From assembly GCA_000320545.1 (NCBI GenBank), contig ADNK01002372.1, positions 1 through 64,000 of the forward strand: a stretch of DNA of 64,000 nt. Direction: 5' to 3'. A model generated the notes under the pieces. The model was given only the letters and a program-made list of their open reading frames with translations. It was not told where the DNA came from and did no database searches. A program made the position numbers and the translations under genes. How positions within the stretch are numbered: position 1 is the stretch's first letter; each line of letters starts with the position of its first letter. Positions 10,666 through 59,945 of the stretch are shown one piece after another. Source of the DNA: Bigelowiella natans CCMP2755. Taxonomy: Eukaryota > Protista > Cercozoa.

Positions 10666-12660
10666 ATGTTTGCCGTGCCAGATTTTAAGACGCTGAATGC
10701 AGAAGCGGCCTTAAGAAATTATCATGTGAATCCGCGCCTTGGTACGTTTATTCAGTTTATATTCATTCCTGTATCTTGAAACTGGAAATTGTACGTGGTA
10801 AATCTTCAATTTTAATCGAAACTTCATGCTGTCGTCTCAGACTACTCGACCGTTTCCGGGGTCAGAGGTCCTCTTGTTGTTCTTGAAAATTGTAAGGTTG
10901 GCAATCACAAAATCATTTCTACCTCCCCACATGCTTGCTGCTAGTTTACTGGTGTGAGCATAAAAACTACTCTACGGTTTTGCATATGAAGAAATGTAAA
11001 TCTCCCCATTGTCAGGTTCCGAAGTTTGCAGAGATTGTGGAGCTTCAGATCCACTCACATAAAGGGACGGAAACAAGACATGGTCAGGTTCTTGAAATCA
11101 ACGGAAATCGTGCGGTCGTACAGGTAACGCGTTACAACATGATAATCCCAAATTTTCCTCAAAAGAGACCTTGAAATAAATGTCAGGTTTTCGAAGGCAC
11201 TTCAGGAATCGACAACACAAAGACCCGTTGCGAATTCACGGGCGATGTTTTGCGGATGGCAATCTCTGAAGATATGCTGGGACGCTCCTTCGATGGTTCA
11301 GGAAGACCTCTCGATAAAATCAAAGTTGATACATCAGACTCTGATAAAATGAACATTCATGGTACTTGAAAATCCCTCTCGTTTGATCTCAGTTAAATTT
11401 GCATACCAACGCCGTCATCTATATTTTTTTATAGGTGAGAGCTATACCCTCCCAATTATGGCTGAACAGTACATGGATATTGCTGGAATGCCTATCAACC
11501 CTACAACTCGTCAATATCCGAAAGAGATGATTCAAACCGGAATCAGTGCAATTGATGTCATGAGTTCTATCGCTCGTGGACAGAAGATTCCGCTCTTCTC
11601 CGGTGCTGGTCTTCCACACAACGAAGTTGCGGCTCAAATCTGCAGATACGCTTCTCTAGTTAAGACATCAGATCGAATTGATGAATCGGAAGAAAACTTC
11701 GCTATTGTCTTTGGAGCTATGGGTGTCAATCAGGAAACTGCACGCTATTTCCAGCACGATTTTGAAGCGGGGGGGGCAATGTCCAGGACTGTTCTTTTTC
11801 TCAACTTGGCAAATGATCCTACTATTGAGAGGATCATCACACCTAGACTTGCATTGACAACCGCAGAATATCTCGCCTATGAACGCGAGATGCACGTTCT
11901 CGTCATCCTCACAGATATGACTTCTTATGCTGATGCATTGCGAGAGGTTTCCTCGGCTAGAAGTGAGATTCCAGGTCGCCGCGGTTATCCTGGTTACATG
12001 TACACCGATCTTTCCACAATTTACGAAAGGGCAGGACGTGTTGCCGGTAGTAACGGTTCCATCACCCAGATTCCAATCTTAACAATGAAAAACGACGATA
12101 TCACTCACCCTATTCCTGACCTTACGGGATACATTACTGAGGGCCAAGTTTACATTGACAGAAAGCTTCACAATAAACAAATCTATCCTCCGATCAATGT
12201 GCTTCCTTCTCTTTCCCGATTGATGAAAAGTGCTATTGGTAAGCGCATGACTCGCATTGATCACCCCTCAGTAAGTAACCAGATGTATGCTATGTACGCA
12301 ATGGGAAAAGATAAACAAAGTCTGAAGGCTGTCGTCGGGGAAGAGGCTCTCGACGAAGATGAGAAGCTGTACATTAAATTTGAAGAGCAGTTTGAAAAGG
12401 AATTTTTATGCCAAGAACCCTACGAGGAACGTGATATTTTCAAATCGTTGGATAAGGCGTGGGAACTACTTCGAACTTTTCCTAGGGACCTGTTATCTAA
12501 GATTACTCCTGAGATGCGTGATCTTTACTACAACCGTGAAGACAATGATAGAAATAGAGAAAGGCAGACTGAACCTAAAGAGTGGGCAATAGCTAAGAGG
12601 AAAAAGGCAGAAGAGGCAGAACGAAAAAGGAAAGCCCTACTCGAAGGAAAGAAAGAATAG
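10666..12660 (+). CDS. ATP6V1B: V-type H+-ATPase subunit B (exons 10666-10741, 10841-10896, 11016-11123, 11187-11361, 11435-12660)
   Basis: Motifs [94 protein letters not shown] and [14 protein letters not shown]. Confidence 0.95.
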
Positions 12661-13006
12661 GATGTAGAGGTGTTCTTTTGCACTTACTCCAGAATAACTC
12701 AGTAATTGGGTTGATAAAGTGTAACAGAATAGCTAGTATTTTGATCTTCGAATCTTCACCGCTTAAAAATTGACGGATGCCTGGTGCTTAAGTATTGGCA
12801 GGAGATACAACAGGCGGGAAGAAACTACAATATTCGTCGAAGCCTCAAATGAACAAATTACCCTGAGTATTATGTGGATGTAATTTGTACACCTGGGCGA
12901 CTCGCATGATCATTTCGCAGCCGCAGTGATGTTGTGAACGATGGCAGACCCCGCGCGCGCACTCTAGCACTCCGCGATCAGCAGCGCCGACTTGAAGAAA
13001 CGACAC

Positions 13007-13900
13007 CACGGCCACCACAGCCAGGCCCTGGCGTGATCAGGATGTCCAAAATTGCAAATGCGAGCTCTCAGGCGACTAGCAAGCGCAGCACAGCGCGTGC
13101 ATGTGACCACAAACACATGACAAGTGGGTTGCAGGCTGCAAAAATCCACACTTTCGACAAAATGTGGTCAAAACATGCTTTTTTGAGGTTTTGACGTTTT
13201 GACGTGCATTGTGCAATTGAAAGGACGAATTTCGTGCCAATGTTGAACAAACATGGAAACAAAACCGAGCACAAGTCCGTCAAACCCGGTGACGACGGGG
13301 TTGTGAACAGTGCAGCGCTTTGCGACGCGCTTTGAAGCAGCAGGAAGTTGCAGTTGGTCAAAGAAAAGTCATCAGAACTTCGTTCTAGACTTGTCCGATG
13401 GCCAAACCTCAAAAAATGACCGAAATGTTGACCAAAATGTCCAGCTTCAAGGTCTCAAAGTGTGCAAATTCACACCCGTTGTGTGGCGGATGCACGCTGC
13501 GCGTTTGTTCTCTGCCACATTTTGAATGCGCTTGCGCGTGTGTTTGACCAAACGTGATGACATGCACGAAAATTTCAAAGAAATGCGAGCAAATCTGATG
13601 TCCATCACATCACATGAGGCGCTTGGTGGCGCGCAAAAGCTTCCAAGTGCACATTCTGGCGATTCGTTGCAGGTTTGACGGACTTGTGAGAGGTGTCACA
13701 AAAGTTTGAAGCGCAATTCGTTTCGTGCATGACCATGGAATTTGCAATGAAAAGGTCCCATGCATGACCGGCAATCGCAATCAGACACGATGTGCATGTG
13801 AAAGCAATTTGAAGGCATGCGCGTGCAAAATGGATTTTGCAACGAAAATCCGGGATCACAGATCACGCCCGGCCAGCCGGGCCTGGCTGTGGTGGCCGTG
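13007..13900. mobile_element. Non-autonomous TIR DNA transposon (MITE-like, about 890 bp)
   Basis: Perfect 22-bp inverted repeat cacggccaccacagccaggccc (13007-13028) / gggcctggctgtggtggccgtg (13879-13900), plus an inner ggcgtgatc/gatcacgcc pair. No transposase ORF recognised. Confidence 0.7.
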
Positions 13901-15264
13901 CACCTGCAGACATCAAGACATGCGATGCATGCGCCGCAGCAACAAAAGGCGCATCGTTCATTGGCGTGTGCGCATTGTAGACACGTAATGTCATGTGCAC
14001 ATGCTGTTGCTATGTCCATTGTGCGCACGTGATGCGCATGGAGATTCGTGCAGGCTGGCAGGCTAGCAGGGTGCCAGTGTGGCCAGTGGAGGTGACAGTG
14101 AGCGTTGTGAGACTGGCAAGAACTGGAGAATCCACACGCGGCGGGCTAGCGGGTGTGTCAGGTGTCACGCGTGCACGTCTGGCCACCTGCAGCTCTGGAG
14201 CTGAAGCTGGATGCGCATCAGTGCGATGGACAGATCGTCGTGTGGTCGGCCTGTTCGATTTGGCACTCTGTGGAACTGGGGAATTGCGTGCGCCAGTGCG
14301 GCCAACTCACGATGCATGCCAATGCAAGCGAAGCCACTTGCCACGCACGCTCTGGCGCTCCATGCAGCGCTGCACGCGTGTCAATGCGTGCATCCCAACT
14401 GGCCGAACCGCTGCGGAACGTGTGCAACAGCTTCGCAAACGAAGTGAAGTTTGCAACTGATGAGCATTGGGATCGTGCTGGCTGGCTGGCGTGCTGGCAT
14501 GCGTGTCTCGGCGCCACTCTGGCCAGCTGGCACTCTGTCCAGCACTGTGCTGGTGTGTGGTCGTGTCACAGCCAGGCAGGCTGGCAGGTTGACGAAGCGC
14601 AGTGCGTTCCAGCAGACCAGGGTTGTCCAGTTCCAGAGTTGTGTGGCCAGAGCCAATGGAGAGCTCTGGAGCTGAACAGGGCCACAGGGGCTTCCAGCTT
14701 CTGGGCTTGTGCGAGTGTGCGCAGCGTCGCAACGTGAACTTTCAGCGTTGCGCAGTTGTTGGGTCACGTCCGCTGCCAGGCTGCGTGAGCCGCAACAACT
14801 CAACGCCATGCACCTGAATCACGTTCAGTGAACGACACTTGTTGATTCTTCTTGCATGCCATGCATGCAGATTCCTCCACGTCAGCTTGGGGATGGGGTC
14901 CACAGGACCCGCAGATCGTGCGATCACATTGCCAAGTCAGAAGTCAGTGAACTGGGGGGCACGCGTGCACCATCGCAGGAAACTCCAACAGCAAAGACGC
15001 ACGGTGTGCAGGTTCACACGTGACGAGATCTGGCGGAGGTGCGTGACGTGTGCGTTCACGTTCTCACGCGCAGTGTGCTTGCAAGTTGCGCCTTGCTCAT
15101 CGTTGGAAATGATTCATGCAAGTGCACTTGCATGACAAGGCGAGCCAAATGCCAATGAAGCAGCAGCAATCATGCCATGGTGTGCATGAATGTTGGCAGA
15201 CAAGCGTGACAATTCAACATCGCGTGCGTTTCGAAATGCGCGTCTTTCTCGGCTGGTCATGCGA

Positions 15265-15380
15265 GAAAGACGGATGTTGAAGCAATTCTGCACAGACGAC
15301 AACAGATGACATCAGTTGCACGGAAAGACAGATGTTGAAGCAATTCTGCACTTGCGACAACAGAAGACATTGGTCGTTGC
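15265..15380. repeat. Imperfect 58-bp tandem duplication
   Basis: gaaagac(g/a)gatgttgaagcaattctgcac..cgacaacaga(t/a)gacat occurs twice. Confidence 0.8.
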
Positions 15381-17114
15381 AGGAAGAACGAAAGTGCACA
15401 CCCGCGGAGGACCAGCTGGTGGATGGGCTTGTTTGGTCCTGTCCATTGAGAGCACGGACAAGCGTGCGGAGGCTCTTTGCTGATGAACGTTCTTTTTGCA
15501 TGCAACTGATTGTGCATTGTCCATGTGACAGGTTTTCGATTGTCATTGCAAATCATTTGAGCTTCAATCAGCAACGCTCATCGGTGACCCAGTCAAGCAG
15601 CTTTGTTTGGCAGCGTGCACGTGACGAAAAAACGGGAAAGACGTGGCGCACGTCGCACTTCGCACTGGTCGGGCCAGCCAACGAGCTCTGGAGCTAGCGA
15701 GTTGGACTGCAGGCTCTGGGGACAGGAGGGCCCGACAACCAAAGTTGCACGGTCTTGAAGCCGCCAAACTGTGCGCACGTGCTTCAAAGTGTTGTCAAGG
15801 TGTTCGTTGGCCACTCAATGATTCGTGATGCAGTTCACTCGCAATGGCTGTGTGCTCGTTCGTTCGAGTGGAACAAGTGGTGCTTTTTTGACTTCGCTGG
15901 CGCCATCGTGTCAACCACGGATCGACGTTCAAACAGAACAGTGTGTTTGTGTTGACAATTGGCTTTGAAAAAGCAACACAAGAACGCGAAAGTGAACGTG
16001 CGATGAATCCAACAGGTGACAGTGAACAATGAACAATGATGATGAACTGCACTTCCAAAACGTTGCAAGACGTTTGCAGTGTGCGAAACGCAGTGCCTCA
16101 CACGAACTAGCTTGAGTGAGGACAGGACCAACTGGAAAACCAGGAAGGTTTTTTTGGAATTGGCGCACAGTAGTCACAGGTGATTTGAGAGACTCTCGGG
16201 AAAGTTTGGCATCTGGCTTCGGACTTCTGGAACCTTGTGAAGCATTTCTGGAATTCAGGTCAATGTGGCACATCTTTCCCTGAGAAACGGCCAATAACAT
16301 TCTTCGTTTGTGCAATTTAACAAATGTCAATCAATGTCGCAACTTGAAAATCTAAACTTGACCCTGTCTCATTCACATCGTAAAAAACGGACAATTGTTG
16401 GTGCATTCGCGAAGCCTTCCGGAAGTGTTGGAGCTGAATCACAAAACTCACACAACACTAAATGGTGGACATTCTGTATCTAAGACTACGTTTCGGAACC
16501 AAAATTGAGAACAAAACGGAGTATCTTTCTCCGCGTTCGACGCTTTGTTCGAAAGGCGGCCGTGCAAGCCACGCATCACAAATGAGATTAGTGAGAAATC
16601 ATGCAATTTAGGGAAATCACAATGCCATGTGCATTCTATCTACCGACAACTCAATTCAGGTTCAAATGTGAACATTACAGAGGCGATGTTCTGTTTTCTT
16701 GTGTAGTCGTCAGCTTTTAATAGCTTGAACTCGTCATCTGGAAGTATCAAAATAGAATTCTTCATTTGACATGTTAGATGACTTCCACAATATTCGAAAA
16801 GTTGTCATATTTTCATGTCGCCATTGGTTTTTAAGATTGAATACATAACGTGACTAAGTATATTATGCTAATATTTAGTCTGCAAAATCAAATTCAAAAG
16901 AATGTCAGCTCCCGATGTGCGCCAAAAGAATCTACGCTAAAGGATATTTCAGGCAAATACGGTTTCTGTTGTTAAATCATGTTTAAAAAAGCCTTATTTT
17001 ACAAATTTTTATGAGATAGTACGTTGTCATTATAGATCTAAGGATCATTAATTCTTTCACGCTGCGCTTGGAACACGCACTCCGCACACACAAACCAAAA
17101 GCCAACACACCAAA

Positions 17115-19350
17115 ATGTCTTCCGAATCTGCTGCTGCCCCAGCTGCTGGAGGCAAGTCCGAATCCTTCGCATTTAATGCTGATATCACACAGGTAAAGAA
17201 ATGAATGATTCTGAAGATTACATAAATTTGTGACTGATTGGTCCTCATGGAGTTGACGTTGTCCTTTTCTTATTTAGTTGATGAACCTCATCATCAACAC
17301 CTTCTACTCGAACAAGGAAGTGTTCCTCCGTGAGTTGATTTCCAACTCTAGCGATGCACTGGATAAGATTCGGTTCCAGAGTCTTAGTGACAAGAGCGTT
17401 CTCGGCGAAGCCAAGGAGCTTAAGATTGACATTATCCCTGATCCTAAGAATAACACCCTGACGATTCAAGACTCAGGGATTGGTATGACAAAAGAAGACC
17501 TTATCAACAACCTCGGTACAATCGCTAAGTCTGGAACCAAACAATTTATGGAAGCAATCAAGGCTGGCGCGGATGTTAGCATGATTGGTCAATTCGGAGT
17601 TGGTTTCTACTCAGCATTCCTCGTAGCTGAGCGAGTAACAGTTGAATCGAAGAACAACGATGATGACGTCTACAGGTGGTCCTCTGATGCAGGGAACTCT
17701 TTCAAGATTGAGGCGGTACCTGATTCAGACCTGAAGCGCGGAACCCGTATCACACTTCAATTGAAAGATGATCAGCTATCCTATGTCGAGGAGAAGACTC
17801 TGAAGGATCTTGTGAAGAAGCATTCTGAGTTCATCGGATTCCCTATTTCTCTGTGGGTAACAAAAACTGAAGAGAAAGAAGTAGATGACGATGAGGACGA
17901 GGAGGATGGAGACGACGATGATGATGATAAGCCTAAAGTTGAGGAGGTCAAGTCTGAGAAGACTGAGAAGAAAAAGAAAACTATCACGGAAGAAAAATCC
18001 GACTGGGAGGTTCTCAACAAGCAGAAACCTATTTGGACACGTGCAAAGGACGAAATCAAGAAGGAAGAGTATGCTGCTTTCTACAAAGCTCTGACTAACG
18101 ACTGGGAGGAACATCTTGCAGTCAAGCACTTCTCTGTCGAAGGACAACTTGAATTTAAGGCACTCCTTTTCTGCCCTAAGCGAGCCCCTTTTGATCTTTT
18201 CGAAGGTAAGAAGAAGAGGAACAACATTAAGTTGTATGTTCGAAGGGTGTTCATCATGGACAACTGTGAAGATCTCATCCCTGATTACATGGCTTTCGTG
18301 AAGGGAGTAGTGGATTCTGAGGATCTTCCACTAAACATTTCTCGTGAGTCGCTTCAGCAGAACAAGATTCTTCGAGTTATTAAGAAGAATATTGTGAAGA
18401 AGTCTATTGAGATGTTTAAAGAAATTGCCGAGAACAAGGATGATTACAAAAAGTTTTACGAAGCATTTGCAAAGAACATCAAACTCGGAATTCATGAAGA
18501 TAGCACCAACCGAAAGAAGCTTGCAGATCTTCTTCGCTACAACTCCACCGTTTGTGTCAACGAAGTTACTTCTCTGAAGGAATACTGCGGTCGTATGAAG
18601 AAGGAGCAGAAGAATATTTACTACATTACAGGAGAGAGCAGGGCTGTTGTAGAACAGTCACCTTTCCTCGAGAAACTGAAGAAAAAAGGATATGAAGTTC
18701 TTTTTATGGTTGATCCTATTGATGAGTACGCAGTGCAGCAGCTTAAGGAATACGATGAGAAGAAGCTTGTCTGTGTCACTAAAGATGGTTTGAAGCTCGA
18801 GATGACTGACGAGGAGAAGAAGAAGAAAGAAGATGAGAAAGCGGCATTCGAGGATCTCTGTACCAAAATGAAGGAAATTCTCGGTGATAAGGTCGAGAAG
18901 GTAATTCTTTCTGACCGTCTATCGACATCGCCATGCTGCTTGGTGACGGGAGAATTTGGTTGGTCCGCCAACATGGAGCGTATCATGAAGGCACAAGCCC
19001 TTCGTGACAACTCGATGACCAGCTTTATGGTTTCTAAGAAGACCTTAGAGCTCAACCCAGAGCACTCCATTGTGAAGGAGCTTCGTGTAAGATTCCAAAG
19101 TAACGCACAGGACCAAACTGTGAAGGACCTTGTATGGCTTCTTTTCGAAACTTCTCTTCTTACTTCAGGATTTAGTCTGCCAGAGCCAACGACGTTTGCT
19201 GGACGAATTCACAAACTCATCAAGCTTGGCCTTAGCATTGCAGATAATGATGAGGAGGAGGTAGTTCCTGCTGAAGAAGCTAATAAAGAAGATGATGACG
19301 ATGTACCACCTCTTGAGAACCAGGGAGAGGACATGGAGGATGTTGACTAA
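17115..19350 (+). CDS. HSP90: Cytosolic heat shock protein 90 (exons 17115-17192, 17278-19350)
   Basis: [10 protein letters not shown]|[56 protein letters not shown] and [10 protein letters not shown]. The C-terminal MEDVD is a variant of MEEVD. Confidence 0.98.
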
Positions 19351-19599: not shown

Positions 19600-20870
19600 G
19601 CGTGCACATGCTGGCATGCAGCACTTGCGTGCTGCACAATGCCCTTGCAAATAGCTAGACGCGCGAAACCCTTGCCAGAATGGCTGCGCGTGTAGCAACG
19701 ACATGTTCGGACACTGGCACTAGCTGCAGCTAGTCTCAACTGGTCGCCCAAACGTCACTACACGGTGATCACGGAAAACGAGGGCTCTAGATCGAGCTCA
19801 TCGCCGACATTTCATCGTTCATTGTTGTGTGTGTTCCCCAAAGTCCATCATTATTTGGGCATTCCAGCATTGTGCACGTCTAGACGTTCCAGCGTTGACC
19901 GACGCGAGGAGAGAACCCAAGACGGCGGCAGTCTGTGATCGTTGATTGTTCCTCGACACAACTGCTAGCAGCGGCCTGCATGCGCTAGTGCGTGTGAACC
20001 TGACACACAGCCCTAGATCGCGCCAAGCAAAACTTCAAGTTTGAATGTGAACAATTTGCTGCACCAGTCTAGCAGGGCAGCGAACTTGTCAACGAAGTCT
20101 AGCAGGGCAGCGAAGTCCAAAGTCTGAGTGTGCACTGAACTCATTTTTGCAAAACGAGACACGTTCGACCTCCCGACTTGTGAAGACTCACTTTTGCTTC
20201 GCACGATGTTTGAACTTCAGTGCGCACACCATCGGCTCTTCGCCAAGGATCAAACATTGTGTTTCGAGCTAGCGAGGTGAAAGCATTGAAAACAAGCTCC
20301 AGAGCTGAGTGCACTTGATGACCAACTAGCCAACCTAGCCAGCTAGCAATCTGTCAACTAGTCTAGTAGTCAATGTGAACACACGTGCAGAGCACTCCAA
20401 CACTGTTGACACACTTCCTCAGTCACATCGCATGACCAGCAATCTGCACCTTGGCCCCGTCAAACGCACAAGCATGTGGTTCGAATGCAGGCGCTGTGCT
20501 CGATCGTGCTGCAAGCTTGCTAGCTTGCACTTTTCACTTCAGACACCATTGACGTACTCAGCTAGTCAGTGCCCAATTCAATGACCACGCAGCTACCTGG
20601 CTTGTTTGATCTTTGCGAAGAGCTGGTCAGAGCCCACCTAGCCACGCACGTTGCACGCTGGCATGACTGAGTGGAGCTCTGGAATGAAGGCTCGTCCAAA
20701 CAACAGGCGAACCATCACACTTTTCATGTGTGCGCTCGTTCATTCGTCCATGTCTGCCAAACTCCTGCCGTGGCGCATGGGCGCGTGCCGCCGATGTTGC
20801 TGCGCGTCAAGACAGCCAATCTAGCAATGTGCCATGAAGTCAGAACGAAGTCCAGACTTGTCGCTGTGCT
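19600..20870. other. Second TpA-depleted, CTAG-enriched intergenic island
   Basis: In 19860-20830, about 16 of about 19 TpA lie in CTAG. Includes a 30-bp-period duplication of tctagcagggcagcgaa at ~20068-20115. Confidence 0.85.
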
Positions 20871-23795: not shown

Positions 23796-24010
23796 TATAT
23801 ATTATGCGAGTACATATACTGCTTTTTAATAAGACCTACAATCTTAGAATCAGTCGTTGCATGCTGCTCATTTATCATTTTGTTTCGAACCACTTAGAAC
23901 CACTCAATTTTCGCTATCAAAGTGTACCGCAAAATGCGACTGTAGCTCTCGGCAAAAAATGGAGGAAACTATTGAATTCTACATTAAAACGAATTAATGC
24001 CGAAGCTTGA
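20995..24010 (+). CDS. CDC123-like (R2K clade) ATP-grasp protein with N-terminal WH2-like motif; about 10 exons
   Basis: Spliced motifs VFVKGSSRSAKDA, FVR|SERIYQDM, AIREW, MEFRGFV..ALCQY, NYIADFAI, WIIELNPY..TDGAMFSW and NFRY. The N-terminus is ALGMALKRVKLKKNKEVNDRSAP. Confidence 0.8.
22269..22404. repeat. Intronic minisatellite, 3 copies of 45-48 bp
   Basis: caaacaatagcagcagttctcacat(t/c)ctacta(cta)t(t/a)ggcattatatc is repeated. Confidence 0.85.
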
Positions 24011-24323
24011 TTTAAATAACACTCTAAGGGGACGGATGGCATTCATCGTGGTTCTTGCAGCTAAAAACAACTGCGACAATCTAGCAATTGCTAAATGTAG
24101 TGATGCATGAAAATGTACGCAGCAGAGCTGATGATAGTGACTGGCTGTGAAGTACGTTCTGCTACATGTAACCCACTAGTTAAATGCTACGATGAGATGG
24201 ATAGCTAGATAGGACACACAGCGCAGTAGCTCACTCACGGCACACTCTAGGTAGCTAGGCTTAGCAGCAACAGATCCGTGCTTTTGCATGCAGCAGAGCT
24301 ACAGAGGGGTATTATAGACACGG

Positions 24324-24364
<41 letters not shown>

Positions 24365-24366
24365 AA

Positions 24367-25440
24367 GACGGATGTAATGAAATGTTTAAATTTTTTCAAT
24401 GGTCACCCTAATGTAGCTGTGCAAAGCAGCGGCTACAGCGCTCAAGTTGTGTCCACTTGTTTCCGGTGTCACGTGTTGATGATGCACACATGAGAAAGCA
24501 TTGCAATTTGGTCGGTCATGTCGTACTTTGCGCGCAGCAGTGCGAGCTCTTTTTTCTGCATTTGTGTGTGTGTGTGTGTACATGCACATGTGTGTACACA
24601 TTGTTACATGCCCATTGTGCTAGCATGGGCACTTTTGCTAGGCTCAGCTGCAGCAAGTCCGTTTTGCATCTGCAGTAGAGGCATGCTTGAAAAGCGAAAC
24701 ATGAGGATGGCTAGATGGTGTCACGACCATCTAGCTATCTAGCCATGGAACACGCGTTGTCATGTAATGATGGCATGTTTCCATGCGACGGCAGGCGAAT
24801 CTAGGAACGCATGCGCGTCAGCAGCAGCGCTGGCTAGCTAGCTAATTTTAGAGCTATGGCGGCGGGCTTGATTTAGCTCTCTACAGCATGTCCACTGTCA
24901 GCAGACTGTGGCTGCAATCTAGCTGTGCACACATCGATGCCCCTATCGCTAGCCCTATGCATCGATCGTCAGCTTAACGTTTTCAGCGGTCTAGCTAGGT
25001 AGCTGCTAGCGGTAACTCTTATTTGATCTAGCATCCATCATCAACGAGTAAGGAAGAACAGGTAGCTAGGTATGCAGCGAGTCGATGCACATGCTAGCAT
25101 CTAGCAAGCTAGATGTGCCAATGAGCGCGATTGCCATGTTTGCTCTGATCATGCGACCATGTGCGTGTTGGCGGATGAGCGAGACACGACGTACATGTGA
25201 TGTACACGTGCACGCATCGCAGTCACGCACATTCACATGCAAATGCAATTTAAATCACATAAGAGGGAAAATCACACACGTGCAGCCACGAGTATGCACA
25301 TGTACGTACATAAATCGTACATATGTGTGTGTGTGTGTGTGTGTCCTAAAACATCTAAACGCTGTAACCGCAGTTCTACGATGCAAAGCTACATCACAGG
25401 AAAACAATTGGAAAAAATTGAAAAATTCATCACATCCGCC
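24367..25440. mobile_element. Degenerate long-TIR non-autonomous element (about 1.07 kb) next to a (TA)n tract
   Basis: The left end gacggatgtaatgaa..ttttcaat..atgtagctgtgc..gcggctacagcg is the inverse of the right end cgctgtaaccgc..aaagctacat..attggaaaa..ttcatcacatccgcc. The same end sequence recurs at 25521 (+), 59537 (-) and 59640 (+). Confidence 0.6.
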
Positions 25441-25520
25441 GCACACATTTGCATGTACGTGAATATGTGCAGACATGTAAAACGGACAGGTGTATTGAAT
25501 TGAACAAACCAAACATGTGA

Positions 25521-36439: not shown

Positions 36440-37450
36440 ATGGTAGCCTCACAGCAGACGCACAGTATTGTTCTGCTTATTGTGTATTGTGTAATGGGTT
36501 CATCAGTATAACAAGCAAGCAAGCAGCTAATGCAATGAGAAGTGGTTAGGCGTCATCGTGCTACGAACACGCTAGCACGTGGTAGAGGTGCACATGCATG
36601 ATGCACATGTGCAAAAATGCATAAGGCTAGCAAGTATCTGTCATGCAGACACAATATGTGATGACAACCACCAAATATGTGGATGCAACTTAGTGCATCA
36701 CAGTCTGTTGTTGGTACTAGCTATTACCCTTGGACACAACGATCATACATGCTAGCATGCACATGTGTGTACAAAAATGTATTAATGTAGTAGTGACGCG
36801 TGCGCATCGACTGGCATGCTAGCATGATAATGTTGTGCATACAAGCATAACTAGATAGCTTAGTTTGTGCATGCAGCATCGCACTGCTAGACTGCCACGA
36901 CGGATAACGCAAAATGCAACATGAACAATGTCTAAGATGATTGTCTGGTTTTGAATTACACATTTATACATTCATGCCACGCGAACATCGTAGTGGCCAG
37001 AAAGACGTCTATCTAGCTATCGTATACGCACGTCGTGCAAGCTAGTAAGTCACACTTAGCTTGCACATTTGTGCTGTGCATGCAAGGCTAGAAGGTCTAG
37101 CTAGCTAGATGCATCTAGCAGATGGATGCCGTAGATTAAATGTGTTTTCTTATTAGAATCGGACGTCGAGGTCAACGGCACGCAATTGAGTGCTGCAACA
37201 CCACTTGCTAGCGTGCACTATAGCTAGCGCTAGTAGCACCACACATGCTAGCATGGCATGTGCCGTGATGCATGCCATCTAGCCATGCATATCTGATATG
37301 CTTGCACACAAGCTGGCAGTACTAGAGTAGAAGTCTTTTATATACTTTAGCTTGAGCTAGCTCTGCACGTGCATGATGTGTGGATGCATGCATTAGTTAA
37401 CGCGTCCCGACTCTTTGCTCTACTTCAATTATTCCTCACTCACGCATGGT
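36440..37450. other. Convergent intergenic spacer with partially TpA-eroded, CTAG/GCATGC-rich texture
   Basis: Dense gctagc, ctagctag, gcatgc and cacatgtg motifs, the same texture as 24050-25450 and 59280-59900. Confidence 0.6.
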
Positions 37451-37520
37451 TAGATGGACTAGAATTTTTATTCTCTCCATTGTTCTAAAAGGGGAATTTC
37501 CGATCCATTGTTTGGGTTTA

Positions 37521-43799: not shown

Positions 43800-44836
43800 A
43801 TGGAATGGTTACGTGACCAGGCCGCCAAGGCCCTCTCGGACCCTAAAGCCTACTTGCAGCCACAGAAAGTCATAGATCTTTTCAACAATATGGGAGCCGA
43901 TGACACGAAGGTCCTCTGCTAGACAATATTTTCTCAATAGATTTTCATCAAAGTGTGGAGAAATCATATCTTATTTTATAATAGGCAATCAACGAGTTTC
44001 TCACAGAGAGTCCATGCAATACGGCACTTATACTGTTCGTTGTTAACTCGAACGAAAGAATTCTACGAGAGACAAAGGGAGCTGAGCAGAAGTCTAAGCA
44101 GAGACAGGGTGCGTTTACCGAAAATTAAAATTTCAGAATGGAGTTTGAGAAACTCATTTTCAAAACATACCTTTTGAACATTGACAACCATCATTTTCAG
44201 ATGGTGGTACATTGGTCATGGAGGCGTCATTGGGGAATCTTCCGGATCATGCAGGAGATAAGAAGTCTATATACTTTGTGAAAAACGTCGAAGGAGTGGT
44301 AGGGCCTTTGAATGATTCATTATCTTATCGTTTATACAATTAGTATCTTATCAATGCGTACATAAATAGGTTGGAAGCCCTGAAGAAGATCTTGACCATG
44401 GAGTTATCCCTGCAAACAATTCCAACATGTTACTTGCTCTTGAACACCTCCTCAAAGATATTTTTATTCCTATGGTGGAGAATGACAAATCATTCAACGA
44501 GTCCGTTGGAATGAATGGAATGGGGCATAAAACAGCTCCAGACTCCGAAGCTACCGAAACTATGCAGAAAACAGCGTCAGAAGGCAAAGATGATGATCGG
44601 AAAGAAGAGGAACCTGGTCAAGTTACTGAAATGGGAGGAAAACTAAAACAGTTTTCGACGCATATAGGAAACGTTATACAAAAGGTGAGTTTTCTTAGAG
44701 AATTCAAACTATCCGGCTAAGGCGGAACCAGCATGCTTTCATAATTTTATTCTATTCAATCCACATAAATGAATGGTTTGTCGAATGTCAAGGGCAAATG
44801 CAAATCTGCACAAGTACATCCATCTGTAACACACAC

Positions 44837-44881
<45 letters not shown>

Positions 44882-47800
44882 AATCAGGTGTCCGGGAACA
44901 TTAAACTTCCTGTGCCGGATGTGTGTATCGATGCGAAGGACGTTAAAAAGGCTGCTAATGATCTTGATATTGTCTCGAAACTTAAACCCGTTTTGGACAA
45001 ATGGATTCACATGATAAAGGATAGACTTGAAAATGAATTGGCAAAACCTAAGCCCGTAAATCCCATGGGTGAAATTCAGTTTTGGAAGGACAGTAATGCG
45101 ATGCTAAGTGCCCTCTATGAGCAAATCACAATGCCAAATATCAGGAATTTCGTTAAAGTGCTGGAACTAGCGGAGGTCGTTGCAATTGAAAGTTTCAAGA
45201 AGCAATTGGGAATGCTACTCAAGCGTTATGTAGAAGCTAAAGACAACGTGAAGTTTCTTCGAACTTTGGAGCGACATTTCAAAAATATAGAAAGTGGAAA
45301 GCTGAACGTAATCCTTGATACCATTCCATCAATGATGGAATCTCTTCGAATGGTTTGGATTATCTCCCGCCACTACAATCGTGAGGAGCGTATGTTCCCC
45401 CTTCTAAAACTCATTGCCCAGCAAATTGCAGAGAAAGTTGAGAAAGCAATCGACATAAAAAAAATACTGGTACGGTACTCGGAGGAGGAGGCCATTAAAC
45501 AGTTAAATTCTGCAATCGCGGTGCTTAAGCAGTGGAAAGACAGCTACATGAAAGTCATGCGCCAAATCGCAAAGGATTGTGAAAATAGTGGTATGGCACA
45601 ATGGAGTTTTGATAGAAAAACGCTATTTGATAAAACTATTTACATGGCAACTTCATGCGAGGCTCTCATGCATATGGTGAATACCTCCTATCAATTTCGA
45701 AATTTTCTTGGAAAGGAGCTCCAAAACGTTACTGGAGACGCAAAATCTATCGATACAGTTCGTGAAGAGGTTAGTGAATCTCTCCGTCCTATGCTCAATC
45801 TTGGCTTTTCGATCTTTGAAGAACCATTCGTGAAGCCTTGGAAAGAAGCTCAAGATCGTTACAAACTACACGTTAGCACAATAGAGACCAAGTGCAAGAA
45901 CTTGATTGACGAGAGCTTTAAAGAGGAGAAGCTTGAATCTGCCGAAGAAGCATTTCAACTGCTGGAAAAATTTAAAGATATTAACACTCTGGACTCGATT
46001 CGAAACAAAATGACCAGCAAAGTATCTGAGGTCCTCAAACAGTATATGAGCTCTCTCCAGGTGGTGGAGCAGACGTTTCAGGAAGGTGTAAATAGCCCCC
46101 CAATATCACGTAATCAACCTCCTGTCGCGGGAAGTATCGCATGGCTGCGATCACTCTATTTTCGCATCAAGAAACCTATTTTGAAATTCATCAAGATGAA
46201 AGATCCTCCCCCAATTTTCGAAGAGGTGAAAGAAAAGTACAAGCAGGTAGCGATGGCTATTACGAATCACGAAGATTCTATCTTCAAGGCATGGTGCGCC
46301 ATGGTCGAGACAAGAACTCAGGGTAGGCTCAAAGACAACATACTTCGCAGTGTAAAGCATTCAGTGGGATTTCTGACTAAAGATGAGATGATTGCCCGAG
46401 CAGCGGAAGAAGAACGCAAAAATGAACGCAAGAACACCCGAAAGAGTAATGCTCGTGACAATGACAATATAGGATCTTCAATGCTCAGAAGTAGTCGCCA
46501 TTCAACAAATTCTAATCGTTCCATGATTAGGAGAAGCTCGAGAAGCATAGCACATTCAAAAACGAGTTTAGGCAGAAGCCGTCAATCTGCTAGCACATTC
46601 TCACCAAATGATGCATTTGGACAAAGTATGGCAGGAAGGGATCTGAACTTTTTGATTCCTGAGGTTATGCCAAATGGAGAAAAGGTCATGAGTAAGCTAG
46701 AGGTTAACTTTTCCCCTGAATTGCGCCAGCTTCTTCGAGAGGCAACGAATCTATCCAGAATGGGGAAGAAAATCCCTGATGTTGCTTTTAACATAGCGCT
46801 GCAAGAGAAGAAATTTCATAGTCTAGTTGAACAGCTGAAAGCTATGCTTAAGACATATGATGACGTAATTGCACGTCTCTCTGATGTGGAAAAGGAATTA
46901 TTTATGAAACATATTCATCAATTACATAAAGTTATGGTGCAAGGTTGTTCGCGATTGAATTGGACTTCTCTTGGTACAGAGACATTCATCAAGAAGTGCA
47001 ACGACGAAATTTCAAAGTTCTCTACAATCGTGGATCAAGTTCAGAAGAAAGCAAAGATGATTGCAAAAAATGTTATTGAAATTCGCAATACTGAACTCGT
47101 GAATGTTAATGAGTTTGCTCATCGCAAGGAACCCATGTCCATTACTGCTGTGAAAGAGATTATGGACAAAACTCTCCAGGCAGCCTTAAGAAAACTGGTG
47201 AAAACTCACACTGATATTCCTCAAATTTTGATTCAGATGGAGAACGATATCTCAGAAGGAAAAGAGGTTAAAAAACATGAGGCAAAAAGACAAGCTGATG
47301 TAACTGGTAATTCACAAGCAGTGGGCAGAAAGGCCAACTTTGCGACAGAGGGATGGCCAAGACCTGGAGCCCATCCAAGTATGGGGAGTTACTATAAGTT
47401 CTGGGAAGTACAAATCTACCATGCTCTCTGCGATTGCATTTCTCGTGGAATAGGGAACTTGAGGAGAGTGCTTGAGAGTGACTTAGTAGTATCAGGGCCA
47501 AATGACGATGAAAAGCCAAAGATTCCTTTGATTACAATTGAGCTACGGATAACATCAACCTCCCCGCAAATCCAGTCGATACCACAGCTTGAGGGCTCCC
47601 TTGAGGCTTTCCGAAAGCTACAGCAGAATATTCAAAACTGCTCGAAATCGTTTATTCGATGGGCGCGTGGAACCTGTTTGTCCACTTCTCTTTGGCCTGG
47701 AGATGCAGATAATGATGATGAAGAACCACAGTGGAATTTTGAAGAGTACGTTAGAACTGACCCGCAAATTCTCGCTCAAAGTACCGAATTCTTGCTCTAC

Positions 47801-48874
47801 CTGAATAAGCTTCAAATGCAAGTGAACACGTACATTCATAGCTGGAAGAAGTACAGCACTGCAGGTGGCCATAAAAACGAATACGGCACAAGGGTAAGCG
47901 GTTTCGATTTGTGGAACAGCAAGAAATTTCAGGACCTAGAGATGCTCAGGCAGAATCTCCCCAGTTCTACTTTTTTTGATGACATTCTTCATTATTACAG
48001 CATGATAAAGAATAAGGTTGATTCGGAAGAGGCTGTCGTGATTGTGGGATTTATCCAACTTAATTGTTCTCCATTGCTCAAAACTGTACGGAGAAAAGCT
48101 GAAGAATGGTTCCAACGGTACGGAGATGTGTTGCGGGAAGCCGCCGAGAAAAGCTTATACGAGCTGAGCGATCAGATCGTCGTACTGAGGCGTGACCTTG
48201 GCAAGCCGCCTAATGGGTTCGAAGAAACGAAATTCGTAATTGACGTCATCAAAAAGATTCAAGGCATGTCTTTGGAAATGGAGATCAAGTTCCCCATTGT
48301 CCTCGACCAATATAATATCCTTCGGGACCACAAAATTGAGCTCAAAGCCGCAGATTTGAAACTTGCTAGTGGTATTCGCAGCAACTGGAAGGACCTTGTT
48401 TTAGAGTCCTACAAAAAGGACTCCAGGCTTACATTGGTCAAAAAGCGTTTCAAAAAATACACACTAAAGCGAATGGAGCAATTCAAAGAAATGGTAGCCA
48501 AGTGCTTTGTAGAGTTCCAACGAGACGGCCCTATGACGCCCTCTGAAGAAAATACTCAGGTATTTTCCGACGAGAAAGCAGCTGCTAAACATGAAGCACG
48601 TCGGAAGAAAGGCCTCGTAAAGATGGATCTTAATTATGGACTTCAGAAATTGAAACACTTCCGCAAAGAGATTGGCAAGTTGGGAGAAATGAGGGACAAC
48701 TTTGGTCGTTGCGAAATTCTATTTAATATTCCTCCTCAAGCATATCCAACCCTGTATAAGATGGAATCTCAAATGGTCGAACTTGAGAAGATATACGCTA
48801 TCTATACGGAATTTCAGGTTGTTTTGTTGCCAAAAATCACAAATCTATCACCTTATATTTGTGTGTAATTATAC

Positions 48875-48938
<64 letters not shown>

Positions 48939-51900
48939 AGTGTTGGGTTAGATATTCGTGGTATGACCACATTACTGCTTCCCCATTATCATTCTAAAAC
49001 TGAAATGTGTAACAACGATAGGCCAAGGTGGAGAGTTGGTCGACGACGTTGTGGGTCAATCTTGACGCAAAGGTTATTGAGAAGGGCAGCAAGGCTATGG
49101 TGAAGATTGCGAAAGAAGCACCAGAGGAATTAAAGCAATACAACTGCTTTGTTGCACTCAAGGATACTATCGATGGATTTCGAAACTCTGTTCCATTATT
49201 TTCAGCTCTCAAATCTGATACAATGCGACCTCGGCATTGGAAACAAGTAGAAGTTTTCTCTGGTATCGAAATTGACATGAATCCCGCTACCTTCAACTTG
49301 AAGATTTTGTTTGCAATGAAGCTACATCGTTTTAAAGATCAAATTTTAGAAATGGTCGCTGCCAGTAGAGGAGAGGCAGGCATTGAAAAATCGTTACAAG
49401 AAATATCAGTTTACTGGAAGAAGGTGTTTTTCACTCTTCGCCCTTACAAGGAGAACCCTGCCAAAGGGTACTTGCTTGACGATCCAGCAGATATCTGCAT
49501 GCAGATTGAAGATAACTCGATGACCCTCGCGGGCATGTCTGCGTCACCTTTTGCAGGAGCCCATTCACGGGCACTTAGGCAATGGGAGGGAGACCTCAAT
49601 CTTGTAAACGAATGTATATCCGCTTGGAAAACGGTGCAGATGAAATGGACCTATTTGGAAGGCATTTTCATGGATTCTGATGATATTCGCATGCAGTTGC
49701 CGAAGGCGGCCAAGAAATTCGAGAAGGTAAACGCCTCTTTCAAGAAGATAATGATAGAGACCAAGCAAAACCCAAATGTGATCTCAACGTGTAAGATAGA
49801 AGGCAGGTTAGAGGGATTGCAGAATCTCAGCAAGGAGTTGGATCAATGTCAAAAGAAACTATCGGACTATCTTGAGCGGAAGAGGTGCTTATTCCCTAGA
49901 TTCTTCTTCATTTCAGATGACGAACTTCTCTACATCCTTGGAAGCTCTGATCCTACCAAAATCCAAACTCACATGCCAAAGCTCTTCGCGAATGCAAAAT
50001 CTTTGAAATTTGTGAGGGGTAACACCGCTGTAGGTGGCATGGCTTCTACCAAGCAAGAAGTGTTTGACTTTAAGAAGGTGGTGAAAATTGAAGGCAAGGT
50101 TGAAGAATGGATGAATGGAGTGGAGTCTGAAATGAAAGCAAGTTTGCACCAGATCACTAAAGAAGCTGTATTCAATTACGCAAATGAAAAAAGAACTGAG
50201 TGGATTTTCGAAAATCTTCAAAGCATCGTTCTTGCTGGCAGTCAAATATGGTGGACTTGGGAAGTAGAAGATGCCTTCAATCAGGTCAAAAAGGGGCACA
50301 AACATGCAATGAAAGCACTTGCGAAGAAGCTTACTTCCCAGCTTAACGACCTTGTTAATGCAATTCGAGGAAATCTTGCGAAGATGCAAAGGCGAAAACT
50401 AAACACCCTGATTATCATTGATGTACATGCGAGGGACATCATTGATTCCTTTGTTAGGGACTCGATCCTCGATGCAACAGAGTTTGCATGGGAATCTCAG
50501 CTACGCTTTTACTGGGAGAGAAAGGTAGACGATATTCGGATTCGTCAATGCACTGGAAATTTCTCGTTTGGATACGAATATATGGGTCAAGATGGGCGTT
50601 TGGTCATCACCCCCCTCACGGATAGATGCTACATGACGTTAACACAAGCTTTGACCTTTCATCTCGGTGGATCTCCTGCTGGTCCTGCAGGAACAGGAAA
50701 AACAGAGACTGTAAAAGACCTCTCAAAGGCCATGGGCCTCATCTGCATTGTTACTAATTGTGGAGAAGGTTTGGACTTCAGAGCGATGGGGTCCATTTTC
50801 TCTGGATTAGCGCAAACAGGCGCATGGGGATGTTTCGATGAGTTTAATCGAATCAACATTGAGGTTCTTTCAGTCGTCTCCACTCAGTTGAGAACCATTC
50901 AAAATGCTCTCCATGCTAATGTCAAACGTTTTGAGTTTTGTGGTAAAGAAATAAACCTAAATCCAACTGTCGGTTTCTTTGTCACGATGAACCCTGGGTA
51001 TGAAGGACGTACAGAGCTTCCCGACAATCTCAAAGCCATGTTCCGACCTGTTACTATGATTCGTCCTGATTTGCAACAAATTTGTGAAATTATGCTGTTC
51101 TCCGAGGGATTTAATGGCGCTAGAGCATTGGCTAAGAAGATGACAGTGCTATACAGTCTCGCTCAGGGTCAGCTCTCGAAACAACATCATTACGATTTCG
51201 GACTGAGGGCATTGAAGTCTGTGCTTGTCATGGCAGGGCAGCTGAAGCGTGCAACGCCCGAATTCGCGGAAGATTTAGTCTTGATGAGAGCTCTGAGAGA
51301 CATGAACACGCCGAAATTTATTTTCGAGGACGTACCTTTATTTAAAGGATTACTGAACGACCTCTTTCCTGGTGCAAACTTGAAGCGTGTGGTAAACAAG
51401 CAACTGAAGGAAGCTGTGACAACGCAGCTTGTCGCAGGACTTTACAAACATGATGACGATGTTGTATTCACAAAGCAGGTAGATAAAGTAATGCAACTTT
51501 ATGAGACCATGCTTACGCGCCACACAACTATGGTCGTGGGGCCTACTGCCGGTGGGAAATCGCTGGTTATTGACACGTTAGCAAAGGCCCAGACAAAAGG
51601 ATTTGGCCTGAAAACGACCTTATTTCCTATCAATGCGAAATCCATGACCCTTCCTGAACTCTACGGTGTTATGGATCCCGCCACCCGTGATTGGACCGAT
51701 GGCCTTATTTCAAAAACATTTCGTGATCTAAACCAACCTTTGCCGGAAGGAGTTGACGAAGCAAGATACATTGTTTTTGATGGCGATGTGGATGCTCTTT
51801 GGGTAGAAGACATGAATAGTGTTATGGACGACAACAAGACACTAACACTTCCAAATGGTGAGCGTATCAGGCTTGAGGATCACTGCAAGTTACTTTTTGA

Positions 51901-57900: not shown

Positions 57901-59199
57901 ATCTCGAGAAGAACATATCAAAGAAACTGCAGAAGCTCTACTGAAACAAGTTCCTCCTCCTGTGGACCTCCTTGTCACTCGTAAGATGTTTGAAAGGCTT
58001 AGAAGAAATCAAGTCCAATCTAAAACACGTAAAAATAAAGCAAAAGCAAAGGCTGCAAAAAGAATCGTGTCAAAGCGAGGAGGGAAAAAGAGTCGAGGAA
58101 AGGGGGGAGAAAAGAAGAAAGAAGGAGGGTCTAATTTTGATTTGTCGTTGCTTCTCCCACCAACTACGGTAATAGCAAAATAGGCTACTTAAATTTATCA
58201 TCCTTAAATTTTGGTCTGATATCATTTATCTAATGAATGCTGTCTGTCAGGTTGTGTTGCTTCAAGAGCTAGAGAGATGGAATGCCTTGTGTACAAAAAT
58301 GGCGGAACTGCTAGATCTACTTCTGAAAGCCCTGAAAGGGGAAGTAGGAATGTCTCAAGATTTAGATGATTTATCGTTTTCTTTGTTCAACGGATTGCTT
58401 CCTGCTCCTTGGCGCAAGTTGGCCCCCGGAACCCAGAAGAAACTAGGGTAAATGATCTTCTAGTTGCTTGCTGCTTCCCCATCACATTACATATATTACT
58501 AACACTGTGTTTGTTTTCATTCAATTTCTTCTATTCCAGTGGGTGGATGGTCCATTTCCAAAGACGGCGTGCACAATATGAAGATTGGTTGAAACACAAA
58601 AAGGATCCAAAGGTGGTGTGTGTTGGAAATGTGATAGATCATTTGTATTGAGTTCAAGATATCTTTCCTCTTATCAAGTATATTACTCATCGTTATTGCC
58701 TCATACAATGCGTGATGTGAATAATGATGATGCCATCACATAGGTAATGTGGTTGTCCGGGCTGCACATTCCTGAGTCATATCTTACGGCTTTAATTCAA
58801 ACCACCTGTCGCGAAAAAGGATGGCCCTTAGATAAGAGTGTGATGTACACTTCGGTTACAAAGTTTGAGGATGAAGATGATGTCAAAGAAAAACCAGAAC
58901 AGGGGTGCTACATAACTGGGCTATACCTAGAAGGAGGTGGTTGGGACATCAAGAAGGCTTGCATCTGCCCCCAAAAACCAAAAAAATTGGTGGAGAATCT
59001 TCCGATATTGCAAGTCACACCGATCGAGAGTAATAAGCTAAAACTCCAGAATACCTTCCGCACTCCTGTGTACGTAACACAAAATAGACGCAATGCGATG
59101 GGCGTTGGTTTAGTGTTCACGGCGGATTTAGCGACAGAGCAACATATAAGTATGTGGGTTCTTCAAGGAGTTGCTCTTTGCCTTAATATCGCAGACTAG
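43800..59199 (+). CDS. DNAH10: Axonemal inner-arm dynein heavy chain, I1/f alpha (DNAH10-like); start approximate; main exons 44888-48817 and 49022-58168
   Basis: DHC_N1 tail (EAKDNVKFLRTLE, WIISRHYN). P-loops GPAGTGKT, GPTAGGKS, GESGTAKT and GVGGSGKQ, whose P2/P3 forms are typical of DNAH10. C-terminal WVLQGVALCLN. Confidence 0.93.
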
Positions 59200-59474
59200 T
59201 CTGTGTAGTTGGACCGAATGACATGGGGCAATGAAACAATTTTTTTGTTGTATTCTAAAATTCATGTGCTCTTTCTACCTTTGACGGTCTCATGCATGCA
59301 CAATGAGATGCATCATCTTTCGATCAGCAAATCGTGCATTCTACCGCTGGATGCATTTGCTAAGACGTGTCTACACTAGTACAGCTAGACAGCTAGAGCA
59401 CGAAGCACACGGTTAACGATGTGTTTCGCACATATTGTACAACATGCAAGTCACTAAGTGCAATGCATCATGCA

Positions 59475-59850: not shown

Positions 59851-59902
59851 GCGACATTGAACCAACAATCGCACTTATTGATCTCACAGCACACATAGTC
59901 TC

Positions 59903-59945
<43 letters not shown>

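Follow-up and report, generated by a model that had tools for sequence, protein, structure and literature searches.

Between the genes for V-ATPase subunit B and HSP90 in the window (the whole 64,000-nucleotide stretch of Bigelowiella natans DNA that was analysed) lies an intergenic nest of transposable elements, at 12890-16290, from which the dinucleotide TpA has been almost erased, as delimited by TpA counts and an assembly check. The left flank is the 3' coding part of V-ATPase subunit B (11359-12660, + strand), called from sequence and RNA reads, and the right flank is HSP90 (17115-19350, + strand), whose single intron, predicted from the sequence, lies at 17193-17277. The B. natans protein EP00466_P011725 in EukProt matches exon 2 of HSP90 with 100% identity, which places the host DNA in the B. 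natans nuclear genome. RNA reads of V-ATPase subunit B extend to about 12850-12900, where the TA-free zone starts; RNA depth stops at approximately this left border and is near zero across the unique island DNA, as judged from one run of short reads, its library type not known, in coarse 190-bp bins.

A TpA-erased transposon nest

The initial annotation had reported about 11 TpA in 3.4 kb and none in 14149-15694, and these counts proved exact: the island holds 11 TpA against 183 expected from base content (observed/expected ratio, O/E, 0.06; Poisson P ~5e-63, or 1e-33 if a coding-like O/E of 0.6 is assumed), and 14149-15694 is the longest TpA-free run in the window. In 500-bp bins across 13001-16000, the TA O/E is 0-0.15 and the mean TG/CA value is approximately 1.6-1.8. 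As also claimed, AA/TT are common despite the TpA loss (O/E 1.24). The statement that TG, CA and CG are all very frequent holds for TG and CA (O/E 1.67) and fails for CG, since CpG, at O/E 0.92 versus 0.66 in background non-coding DNA, is not enriched. The GC content is 53.5% in the island and 42% in the window. Seven of the 11 surviving TpA lie within CTAG, and 10 have a C before or a G after them. The borders, described at first as sharp, are abrupt on the left (5 TA in 12850-12899, then 0) and gradual on the right, where TA recovers across 16290-16850.

We compared contigs assembled from three 2025 Illumina DNA runs with the reference stretch. These independent contigs overlap to cover the island, and in its unique parts they show 0 mismatches and a depth like that of the flanks; one crosses the left border (11900-13036) and one the right (~16080-17600), and the whole island is in no single contig because repeats break them. 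The unique island DNA carries 0 new TA changes between the reference and the three runs, as expected at saturation, with only 11 TpA targets left.

The nest includes two non-autonomous DNA transposons, recognised by their terminal inverted repeats (TIRs), target-site duplications (TSDs) and dispersed copies. The outer element (13007-13900, + strand; ~473 bp without its insert) has a 22-bp perfect TIR starting CAC and a 3-bp TSD (CAC here), and about a dozen near-full copies were found. Nested within it is the inner element (13270-13688, + strand; ~405-420 bp), with a 17-bp TIR starting CAC, a TSD of 2-3 bp (AG here) and at least 40 copies, probably hundreds from read depth. Non-autonomous elements of the CMC/EnSpm (CACTA-type) superfamily have short TIRs starting CAC and ending GTG, and TSDs of 2-4 bp. 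Both island elements resemble them in their short CAC..GTG TIRs, 2-3-bp TSDs and nesting; the outer element is CMC/EnSpm-like as judged by its ends, and for both families the superfamily is assigned, again as "-like", from the ends and not from a known transposase. A TA target-site duplication as the origin of the CAC/GTG ends was rejected, given that all copies have CAC ends and the TSDs vary from 2 to 3 bp. Fragments of a third dispersed repeat (14721-15071) are 76-82% identical to three other loci, and comparison of dispersed copies identifies a fragment of a fourth, high-copy repeat (16019-16176, + strand). There is also a local 58-bp tandem duplication of 90% identity (15265-15370, + strand).

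We considered whether selection has kept a functional element free of TA (a centromere, a structural RNA or a safeguard against transposons that target TA), and whether the DNA is foreign or misassembled. The sharp left border and several ORFs longer than 100 aa speak for function; the ORFs, however, are a by-product of losing TAA and TAG, and about half of the transposon copies that were fetched lie beside similar TA-poor tracts, far too many for centromeres. Pfam gave no match over the cut-off in 8 island ORFs and Rfam gave no match in the island, and a coding or RNA function was set aside with both searches blank. Against a foreign or misassembled island, which the initial annotation had named as grounds for abandoning its proposal, the three 2025 runs reproduce the unique parts at single-copy depth, confirming the assembly. 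The polarised mutation data described below explain the composition without selection, and we regard this group of explanations as very improbable.

Two neighbouring regions, outside the island's coordinates, are informative. Downstream of HSP90 there is a second, partly eroded island (19600-20850) with 27 TA, 20 of these in CTAG; it is a product of the same process as the main island. The DNA at 24000-25500 is rich in transposons and in TG/CA-rich repeats, yet its TA O/E is 0.98, and repeat content alone is thus no trigger.

Polarised changes in transposon copies and insertion scars

The direction of change can be read from an alignment of the inner element, in which five ancestral TA sites in 30 copies give 150 site-copies: 47 are TA, 54 TG, 48 CA, 1 TC and 0 CG. 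Where an ancestral TA is converted, it becomes TG or CA through one transition on either strand, and because neither TG nor CA is a target after that transition, CG does not accumulate. The predicted progression to TG/CA "and then CG" therefore finds no support in the site-copies, in the insertion scars (0 of 18 in the island are CCGG) or in the CpG O/E; TA>CG as an end state was discarded. The fourth repeat again shows TA, TG and CA across its copies.

The hits are independent of one another. There are 24 distinct haplotypes among the 30 copies, all four TG/CA combinations are present in 9 of 10 site pairs, and TG/CA concordance within copies (0.47 versus a null of 0.48) shows that separate single hits accumulate without strand coordination. 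Conversion is nevertheless all-or-none per copy: TA retention is over-dispersed (15 copies keep 0/5; permutation p 5e-5), 10 of the 30 copies keep at least 3/5, and the island copy has all 5 of its ancestral TA sites converted. Between conversion and the TA O/E of the flanks the correlation is strong (rho -0.80, p 2.5e-7), in a BLAST sample biased toward copies resembling the converted copy in the window. The G>A control rate is alike in converted and unconverted copies (0.75% and 0.69%), and copy age therefore does not explain conversion. Conversion follows insertion, occurs in place, and depends on the neighbourhood and not on element family or copy age; single-copy island DNA is fully erased of TA, while some copies of the high-copy family stay unconverted.

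Substitution rates in the two families define the sequence context: T[A]>G 0.33 (inflated, as TA sites were picked for being polymorphic), V[A]T>G 0.035, V[A]V>G 0.006, C[G]>A 0.014 and T[G]>A 0.009. On the A strand the order is T[A]T > T[A]A/C > T[A]G, with T[A]T best and T[A]G worst, V[A]T a roughly 10-fold weaker second context, and no processivity. The weak context follows the main one: V[A]T>G reaches 5.3% among converted copies, against 1.1% among those that keep their TA (Fisher p 2e-4; per-copy p 0.024). CTAG survives because it is a poor context on both strands.

A cluster of 8-bp insertion scars at 13869-15695, each a 4-bp duplication around CTAG, gives a second polarised record, with polarity taken from insertions in the transposon alignments. 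In 15 scars the centre has been converted to CTGG or CCAG (starts 13869, 14051, 14119, 14191, 14272, 14289, 14348, 14519, 14546, 14577, 14629, 14662, 14697, 14772 and 15684), and three keep CTAG (14059 and 14142 within the cluster, 12960 outside it). Counts of CTAG versus CTGG plus CCAG centres are 3:15 for the island, 90:78 for bins poor in TA and 91:2 for bins with normal TA (p 8e-14); the converted scars in TA-poor bins comprise 44 CTGG, 34 CCAG and 1 CCGG. The second island has 9 intact and 5 converted scars, and the CTAG of the fourth repeat (16107-16110) is the ancestral state of its family. Scar centres thus decay from CTAG to CTGG or CCAG in place, and young CTAG scars keep supplying new TA. 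A scan of the fetched loci for TIR elements with a 4-bp TSD yielded no parent element, and our literature searches found no description of these scars.

These records bear on two explanations that need no directed mutation. One is that the elements simply came TA-free and nothing mutated in place. In its favour, the ancestor of the inner element was already TA-poor, with only ~5-7 TA in 405 bp, and TG/CA-rich repeat DNA with normal TA occurs at 24000-25500. Against it, the state of the TA sites varies within one family with the flanks of each copy, the scar at 13869 is absent from most sister copies yet has a converted centre, and at window position 13291 the A is retained in roughly three quarters of the near-identical copies (a rough read-depth estimate). 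Inherited composition, which the initial annotation had listed among the grounds for refuting its proposal, thus holds in part. As the sole cause it is refuted, and we consider it very improbable in that role; it stays a contributor, in that TG/CA richness is partly inherited from already-eroded parent elements. Excess CpG deamination (CG>TG/CA>TA, with TA derived) or GC-biased gene conversion would account for the enrichment of TG and CA and for the raised GC of the island. The former is opposed by the missing CG among the 150 site-copies, the low C[G]>A rate and de novo mutations that go from TA to TG/CA (bioRxiv 10.64898/2026.01.13.699255); the latter, being context-free, cannot yield over-represented AA/TT and a barely touched V[A]V. 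The polarised copies, context rates and published de novo data refute both, and we consider them exceedingly improbable.

The published process and candidate enzymes

The hypermutation process itself is already known: TpA>TpG/CpA hypermutation in B. natans was established by mutation accumulation (Mettrop et al., bioRxiv 10.64898/2026.01.13.699255). In an NCLDV tract, 210 of 211 de novo mutations were A>G/T>C, reported to be all on TpA, at ~1000x background, and among the entries of Table S2 of that preprint are four T>C changes whose context is ATG or ATT. The target was single-copy, activity was seen in vegetative lines, and 124 TpA-poor clusters were counted genome-wide. Measurements were made in two integrated viral tracts, and transposons were inferred from Pfam enrichment only, as "potentially transposable elements" (all bioRxiv 10.64898/2026.01.13.699255). 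By our values the island passes the cluster thresholds of the preprint, and it shares with its tracts the species, the TpA>TpG/CpA change, symmetric on both strands, the regional targeting and the non-host or repeat nature of the DNA; it differs in that the change is polarised in copies of the host's own non-autonomous DNA transposons, and at saturation. The main text of the preprint makes no mention of CTAG sparing, ApT side context, per-copy all-or-none conversion or strand coordination ("CTAG" and "trinucleotide" give 0 matches).

Context-specific A:T>G:C change at TpA, in place, in a non-genic, transposon-derived target and opposite in direction to RIP, as first proposed from this locus, is thus borne out by the polarised copies and scar centres, in agreement with the published mutation accumulation. 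Of the accompanying claim that no mechanism had been characterised, the part concerning the enzyme stands, and the process itself has been reported (bioRxiv 10.64898/2026.01.13.699255). We are confident that the island represents this published hypermutation acting in place on transposons; it is the near-saturated outcome of TpA-directed A:T>G:C change in dead DNA transposons nested between two genes. What marks a target may be silent chromatin on repeat or foreign DNA that is not transcribed. Homology does not suffice as a trigger, since copies of the high-copy family remain untouched in TA-normal surroundings and the NCLDV target is single-copy. A role in genome defence seems to us somewhat the better guess.

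For the chemistry, the likeliest route, which we put at about even chances, is that a TadA/ADAT2-type zinc deaminase turns A into hypoxanthine while the DNA is transiently single-stranded, the change being fixed at replication. A U at -1 of the target A is recognised by TadA, and TadA8e favours a pyrimidine before the A (PMC10586758). The process resembles TadA, ADAT2-3 and TadA8e in A>I chemistry read as A>G and in a preferred U/T at -1 (PMC10586758); T stands at -1 here too, provided that the base modified is A. It differs in that the natural enzymes act on tRNA A34 and prefer C at +1, where T is best here. The proposed search for TadA/ADAT-like deaminases or fusions returned six loci. Judged by their motifs, two are guanine-deaminase-like and a third is otherwise nucleobase-deaminase-like, and the remaining three are a dCMP deaminase, an ADAT3-like gene and a TadA-like gene; no chromatin-reader fusion was obvious in the pieces seen of these loci. 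Putative candidates for dA deamination are ADAT2 Bn78255 (from the preprint), the ADAT3-like L086 and the TadA-like L083; the preprint's ADAT2 gene was not recognised among the six, probably because introns split it. The genome also has five C5-methyltransferase matches, and a literature search found no paper on host 6mA in Bigelowiella.

An A>G at T[A]T and a T>C at A[T]A alter the base pair in the same way, so that sequence alone does not tell whether the A or the T was hit. All the sequence data would therefore fit equally well a thymine at TpA that mispairs with G after modification in silent chromatin, by oxidation to 5hmU/5fU or by some other route, or a specialised error-prone polymerase that inserts G opposite T there. 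Scattered, non-processive hits suit a lesion model. The genome has no Tet_JBP (PF12851) match, but a control was also without a match, making that search uninformative. Pol eta-type mutagenesis has a WA signature and would yield many AA>AG changes, against a V[A]V>G rate of just 0.006. We judge this alternative rather unlikely. Returning to adenine deamination, we propose, tentatively, a natural chromatin-guided, non-processive DNA adenine deaminase system that would erode viruses and any untranscribed nest of the alga's own transposons, independently of homology, and stop at transcription ends.

Comparison with other hypermutation systems

The copies described here add direct evidence that the process also strikes the alga's own transposons, region by region. 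The extension to host transposons with rules of targeting and context, together with an enzyme, would be new if true. The locus adds a polarised fossil record, in which transposon copies and CTAG scars amount to thousands of built-in reporters of known ancestral state; with these, the targeting of the mutator can be related by mapping to chromatin state and transcription, and they supply a context fingerprint that every candidate enzyme has to show in vitro.

The clusters that APOBEC enzymes leave are C>T and coordinated by strand; ADAR acts on dsRNA, with a preference for G at +1. As with APOBEC/AID and ADAR, hypermutation in B. natans is encoded by the host, depends on sequence context and hits viral or repeat nucleic acid. 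It differs from APOBEC in lacking strand coordination, and from ADAR in that G at +1 is the least favoured neighbour.

Fungal RIP is a RID-dependent C>T change at CpA. The two processes have in common a context-specific transition mutagenesis, regional build-up in repeats and spill into adjoining unique DNA. They differ in direction and base pair, which are opposite here (T[G]>A and C[G]>A against T[A]>G); in the trigger, since duplication does not suffice for conversion here, a third of the 30 aligned copies of the high-copy family keeping at least 3 of 5 TA while single-copy island DNA is erased; and in timing, as the B. natans process is seen in vegetative lines. If true, a natural defence by A:T>G:C genome editing, a rare case of endogenous DNA adenine editing whose headline belongs to the 2026 preprint, would mirror RIP.

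Composition and anatomy of the island

The stretch at 12890-16290, between the genes for V-ATPase subunit B and HSP90, contains 11 TpA by exact count where 183 are expected (observed/expected, O/E, 0.06) and none in 14149-15694, in agreement with the roughly 11 in 3.4 kb that the initial annotation reported. TG and CA are indeed very frequent (O/E 1.67), but the accompanying abundance of CG described there is absent, as CpG is neither depleted nor enriched (O/E 0.92); AA/TT stands at 1.24. Of the two borders, both initially described as sharp, the left is abrupt (12889/12890), whereas on the right TA recovers gradually across 16290-16850. CTAG holds 7 of the 11 surviving TpA.

We compared the reference island with contigs of three independent 2025 DNA runs. 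Overlapping contigs tile it and run across both borders; in its unique parts they show no mismatches and a depth equal to that of the genes on either side. The island is therefore neither misassembled nor foreign DNA, possibilities that had been raised at the outset. The flanking HSP90 is identical to a Bigelowiella natans protein in EukProt/JGI. Further along the window, an axonemal dynein heavy chain gene (44798-58183) has two long exons with a microsatellite-containing intron near 48870-49027 between them.

The island consists of dead, nested mobile DNA. A non-autonomous transposon at 13270-13688 (the inner element; approximately 405-420 bp, 17-bp terminal inverted repeats starting CAC, a 2-3-bp target-site duplication, at least 40 copies) is hosted by an outer element at 13007-13900 (approximately 473 bp, 22-bp terminal inverted repeats starting CAC, a 3-bp target-site duplication); in their ends, both resemble CMC/EnSpm transposons. 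Two other dispersed repeats have left fragments, one at 14721-15071 and one at 16019-16176. The remaining DNA is single-copy, yielded no match in Pfam and Rfam searches, and is dense with 8-bp scars, each a 4-bp duplication around CTAG, which in transposon alignments appear as insertions in individual copies. The scar looks like a cut-and-paste excision footprint; no parent element was found in the window or the comparison loci. Scars are very common, with 30 intact in the window and about 250 in approximately 200 kb of other B. natans loci (L002-L086), and are sometimes stacked.

Direction and sequence context of the changes

The island has undergone regional, strand-symmetric, non-processive A:T>G:C transitions at TpA, in place on transposon-derived DNA. 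Five sites of the inner element, scored in 30 copies, carry TA 47 times, TG 54, CA 48, TC once and CG never. The copies form 24 distinct haplotypes, with all four TG/CA combinations present at 9 of 10 site pairs, and therefore record an ancestral TA that was hit repeatedly and independently. The same TA/TG/CA triad is found in the outer element and in the 16019 repeat (the latter read by eye). Pooled purine-strand rates were 0.33 for T[A]>G, a value inflated by the choice of sites, 0.035 for V[A]T>G, 0.006 for V[A]V>G and 0.014 for C[G]>A, where V is any base but T.

Scar centres provided a second, alignment-free clock, with 3 CTAG to 15 CTGG plus CCAG in the island, 90 to 78 in TA-poor bins and 91 to 2 in bins of normal TA. 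Copies and scars alike thus point from TA to TG/CA and away from a predominance of CG>TG/CA substitution, upholding the central proposal of the initial annotation. Its suggested onward step from TG/CA to CG finds no counterpart in the inner-element copies or among the island scar centres (CCGG, 0/18), since a single hit destroys the target. Inherited composition, the alternative it had named, contributes in part, as the ancestor of the inner element was already TA-poor (about 5-7 TA in 405 bp), but the copies show conversion in place.

In TA-poor bins, TA after A (read as T[A]T on the opposite strand) has nearly vanished, CTAC and GTAC survive several-fold better than ATA, and CTAG survives best, a ratio biased by the selection of these bins on low non-CTAG TA. 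CTAG survival has two causes: three surviving CTAGs are intact scars, and may be young, and those at 13077 and 16108 are ancestral in their transposon families and kept TA while other TAs of the same copies changed. Side activity at ApT in transposon copies is region-dependent (5.3% vs 1.1%, p 2e-4).

Targeting by place and a possible role of transcription

Conversion is a property of place. Of the inner-element copies, 15 have lost all five TAs and 10 keep at least three (over-dispersion p 5e-5), and conversion goes with depletion of TA in the flanking 300 bp (rho -0.80). Copy age does not explain this pattern, because background G>A divergence is alike in converted and unconverted copies (0.75% vs 0.69%). 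Within a copy the TG/CA mix is random (0.47, with 0.48 under the null), favouring hits that accumulated one by one over many generations, not a processive sweep along one strand. Repeat status alone is insufficient, because the repeat-rich 24000-25500 keeps its TA (O/E 0.98).

In one 2026 RNA run (X21, a single library, design not given), depth is highest over the 3' end of the V-ATPase gene and ceases at about the left border, and hardly any reads map to unique island DNA. This library suggests that transcription protects and that silence invites the mutator. Among reads on the inner element the unconverted A predominates (33/35 at 13291, 20/24 at 13356); these reads therefore derive mostly from TA-keeping copies elsewhere, hinting that transcribed copies are spared.

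Two further kinds of region in the window are worth recording. The 24000-25500, 36500-37500 and 59000-60000 intervals are repeat- and scar-rich and TG/CA/GC-rich with TA O/E of about 1, a natural unconverted control. Downstream of HSP90, 19600-20850 is a second, partly eroded island, with 27 TA against 70 expected, 20 of the 27 in CTAG, and with 9 intact and 5 converted scars.

Candidate enzymes and relation to known systems

Our best guess for the chemistry, which we would put at an even chance, is adenine deamination on single-stranded DNA, because the T at -1 matches TadA-type recognition. ADAR favours G at +1 and APOBEC edits processively; ADAR-like editing and APOBEC-like processive editing do not fit. 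The TadA family recognises U33-A34, and TadA8e prefers pyrimidine-A (PMC10586758), although native TadA differs from the island process in its +1 preference. A modified thymine, or a polymerase that misinserts opposite T, seems a less probable route; sequence alone fits it as well, and a TET/JBP search of the genome was blank but uninformative.

If adenine deamination is responsible, the genome offers several genes to consider. Mettrop et al. (bioRxiv 10.64898/2026.01.13.699255) proposed one B. natans deaminase gene, the ADAT2 homologue Bn78255, as the enzyme. Two further genes are of interest, one ADAT3-like (L086) and one TadA-like (L083; G000:C3286:2741-6139, minus strand), the latter split by introns and with a hydrophobic leader. 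Searched exon by exon with exons unjoined, L083 has HAE and PC-x-x motifs and matches bacterial TadA structures (E 4e-10), and its downstream exon weakly matches the TadA C-terminus. The five Bn proteins in the portion of File S1 that was examined do not include it (bioRxiv 10.64898/2026.01.13.699255). The leader suggests that L083 is probably an organellar tRNA enzyme, and it would be a weak candidate for the mutator. An Asn seemingly lies at or near the position equivalent to E. coli TadA D108 (by eye, no alignment). Separately, a full-length C5 DNA methyltransferase domain (PF00145, E 2e-76) is encoded without introns at G000:C1391:110667-111599, within an open frame of 649 aa. Host genes are rich in introns, by contrast, and this one could be viral or transposon-borne.

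TpA hypermutation is already published for B. natans and is not a new system. During mutation accumulation, two viral tracts integrated in the genome mutated approximately 1000-fold faster than the remaining genome, almost only by TpA>TpG/CpA and in a subset of lines; 124 clusters of TpA-poor, CpA+TpG-rich 1-kb windows were reported genome-wide, with transposon Pfam domains enriched among TpA-poor coding sequences (bioRxiv 10.64898/2026.01.13.699255). By our own computation, the island values satisfy the thresholds for these clusters. By hand count, Table S2 of that preprint contains 20 T[A]G-equivalent changes among approximately 207, and it lists four T>C changes in the NCLDV tract in ATG/ATT context, at odds with its text, which places all A:T>G:C changes on TpA (bioRxiv 10.64898/2026.01.13.699255). 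These four match the ApT side context of our B. natans transposon copies. To the published system the present locus adds polarised evidence from DNA transposons of the host. It also shows that conversion is all-or-none and depends on place, that strand coordination is lacking, that ApT is a side context and that one border falls at the end of a transcript, additions that help the hunt for the enzyme.
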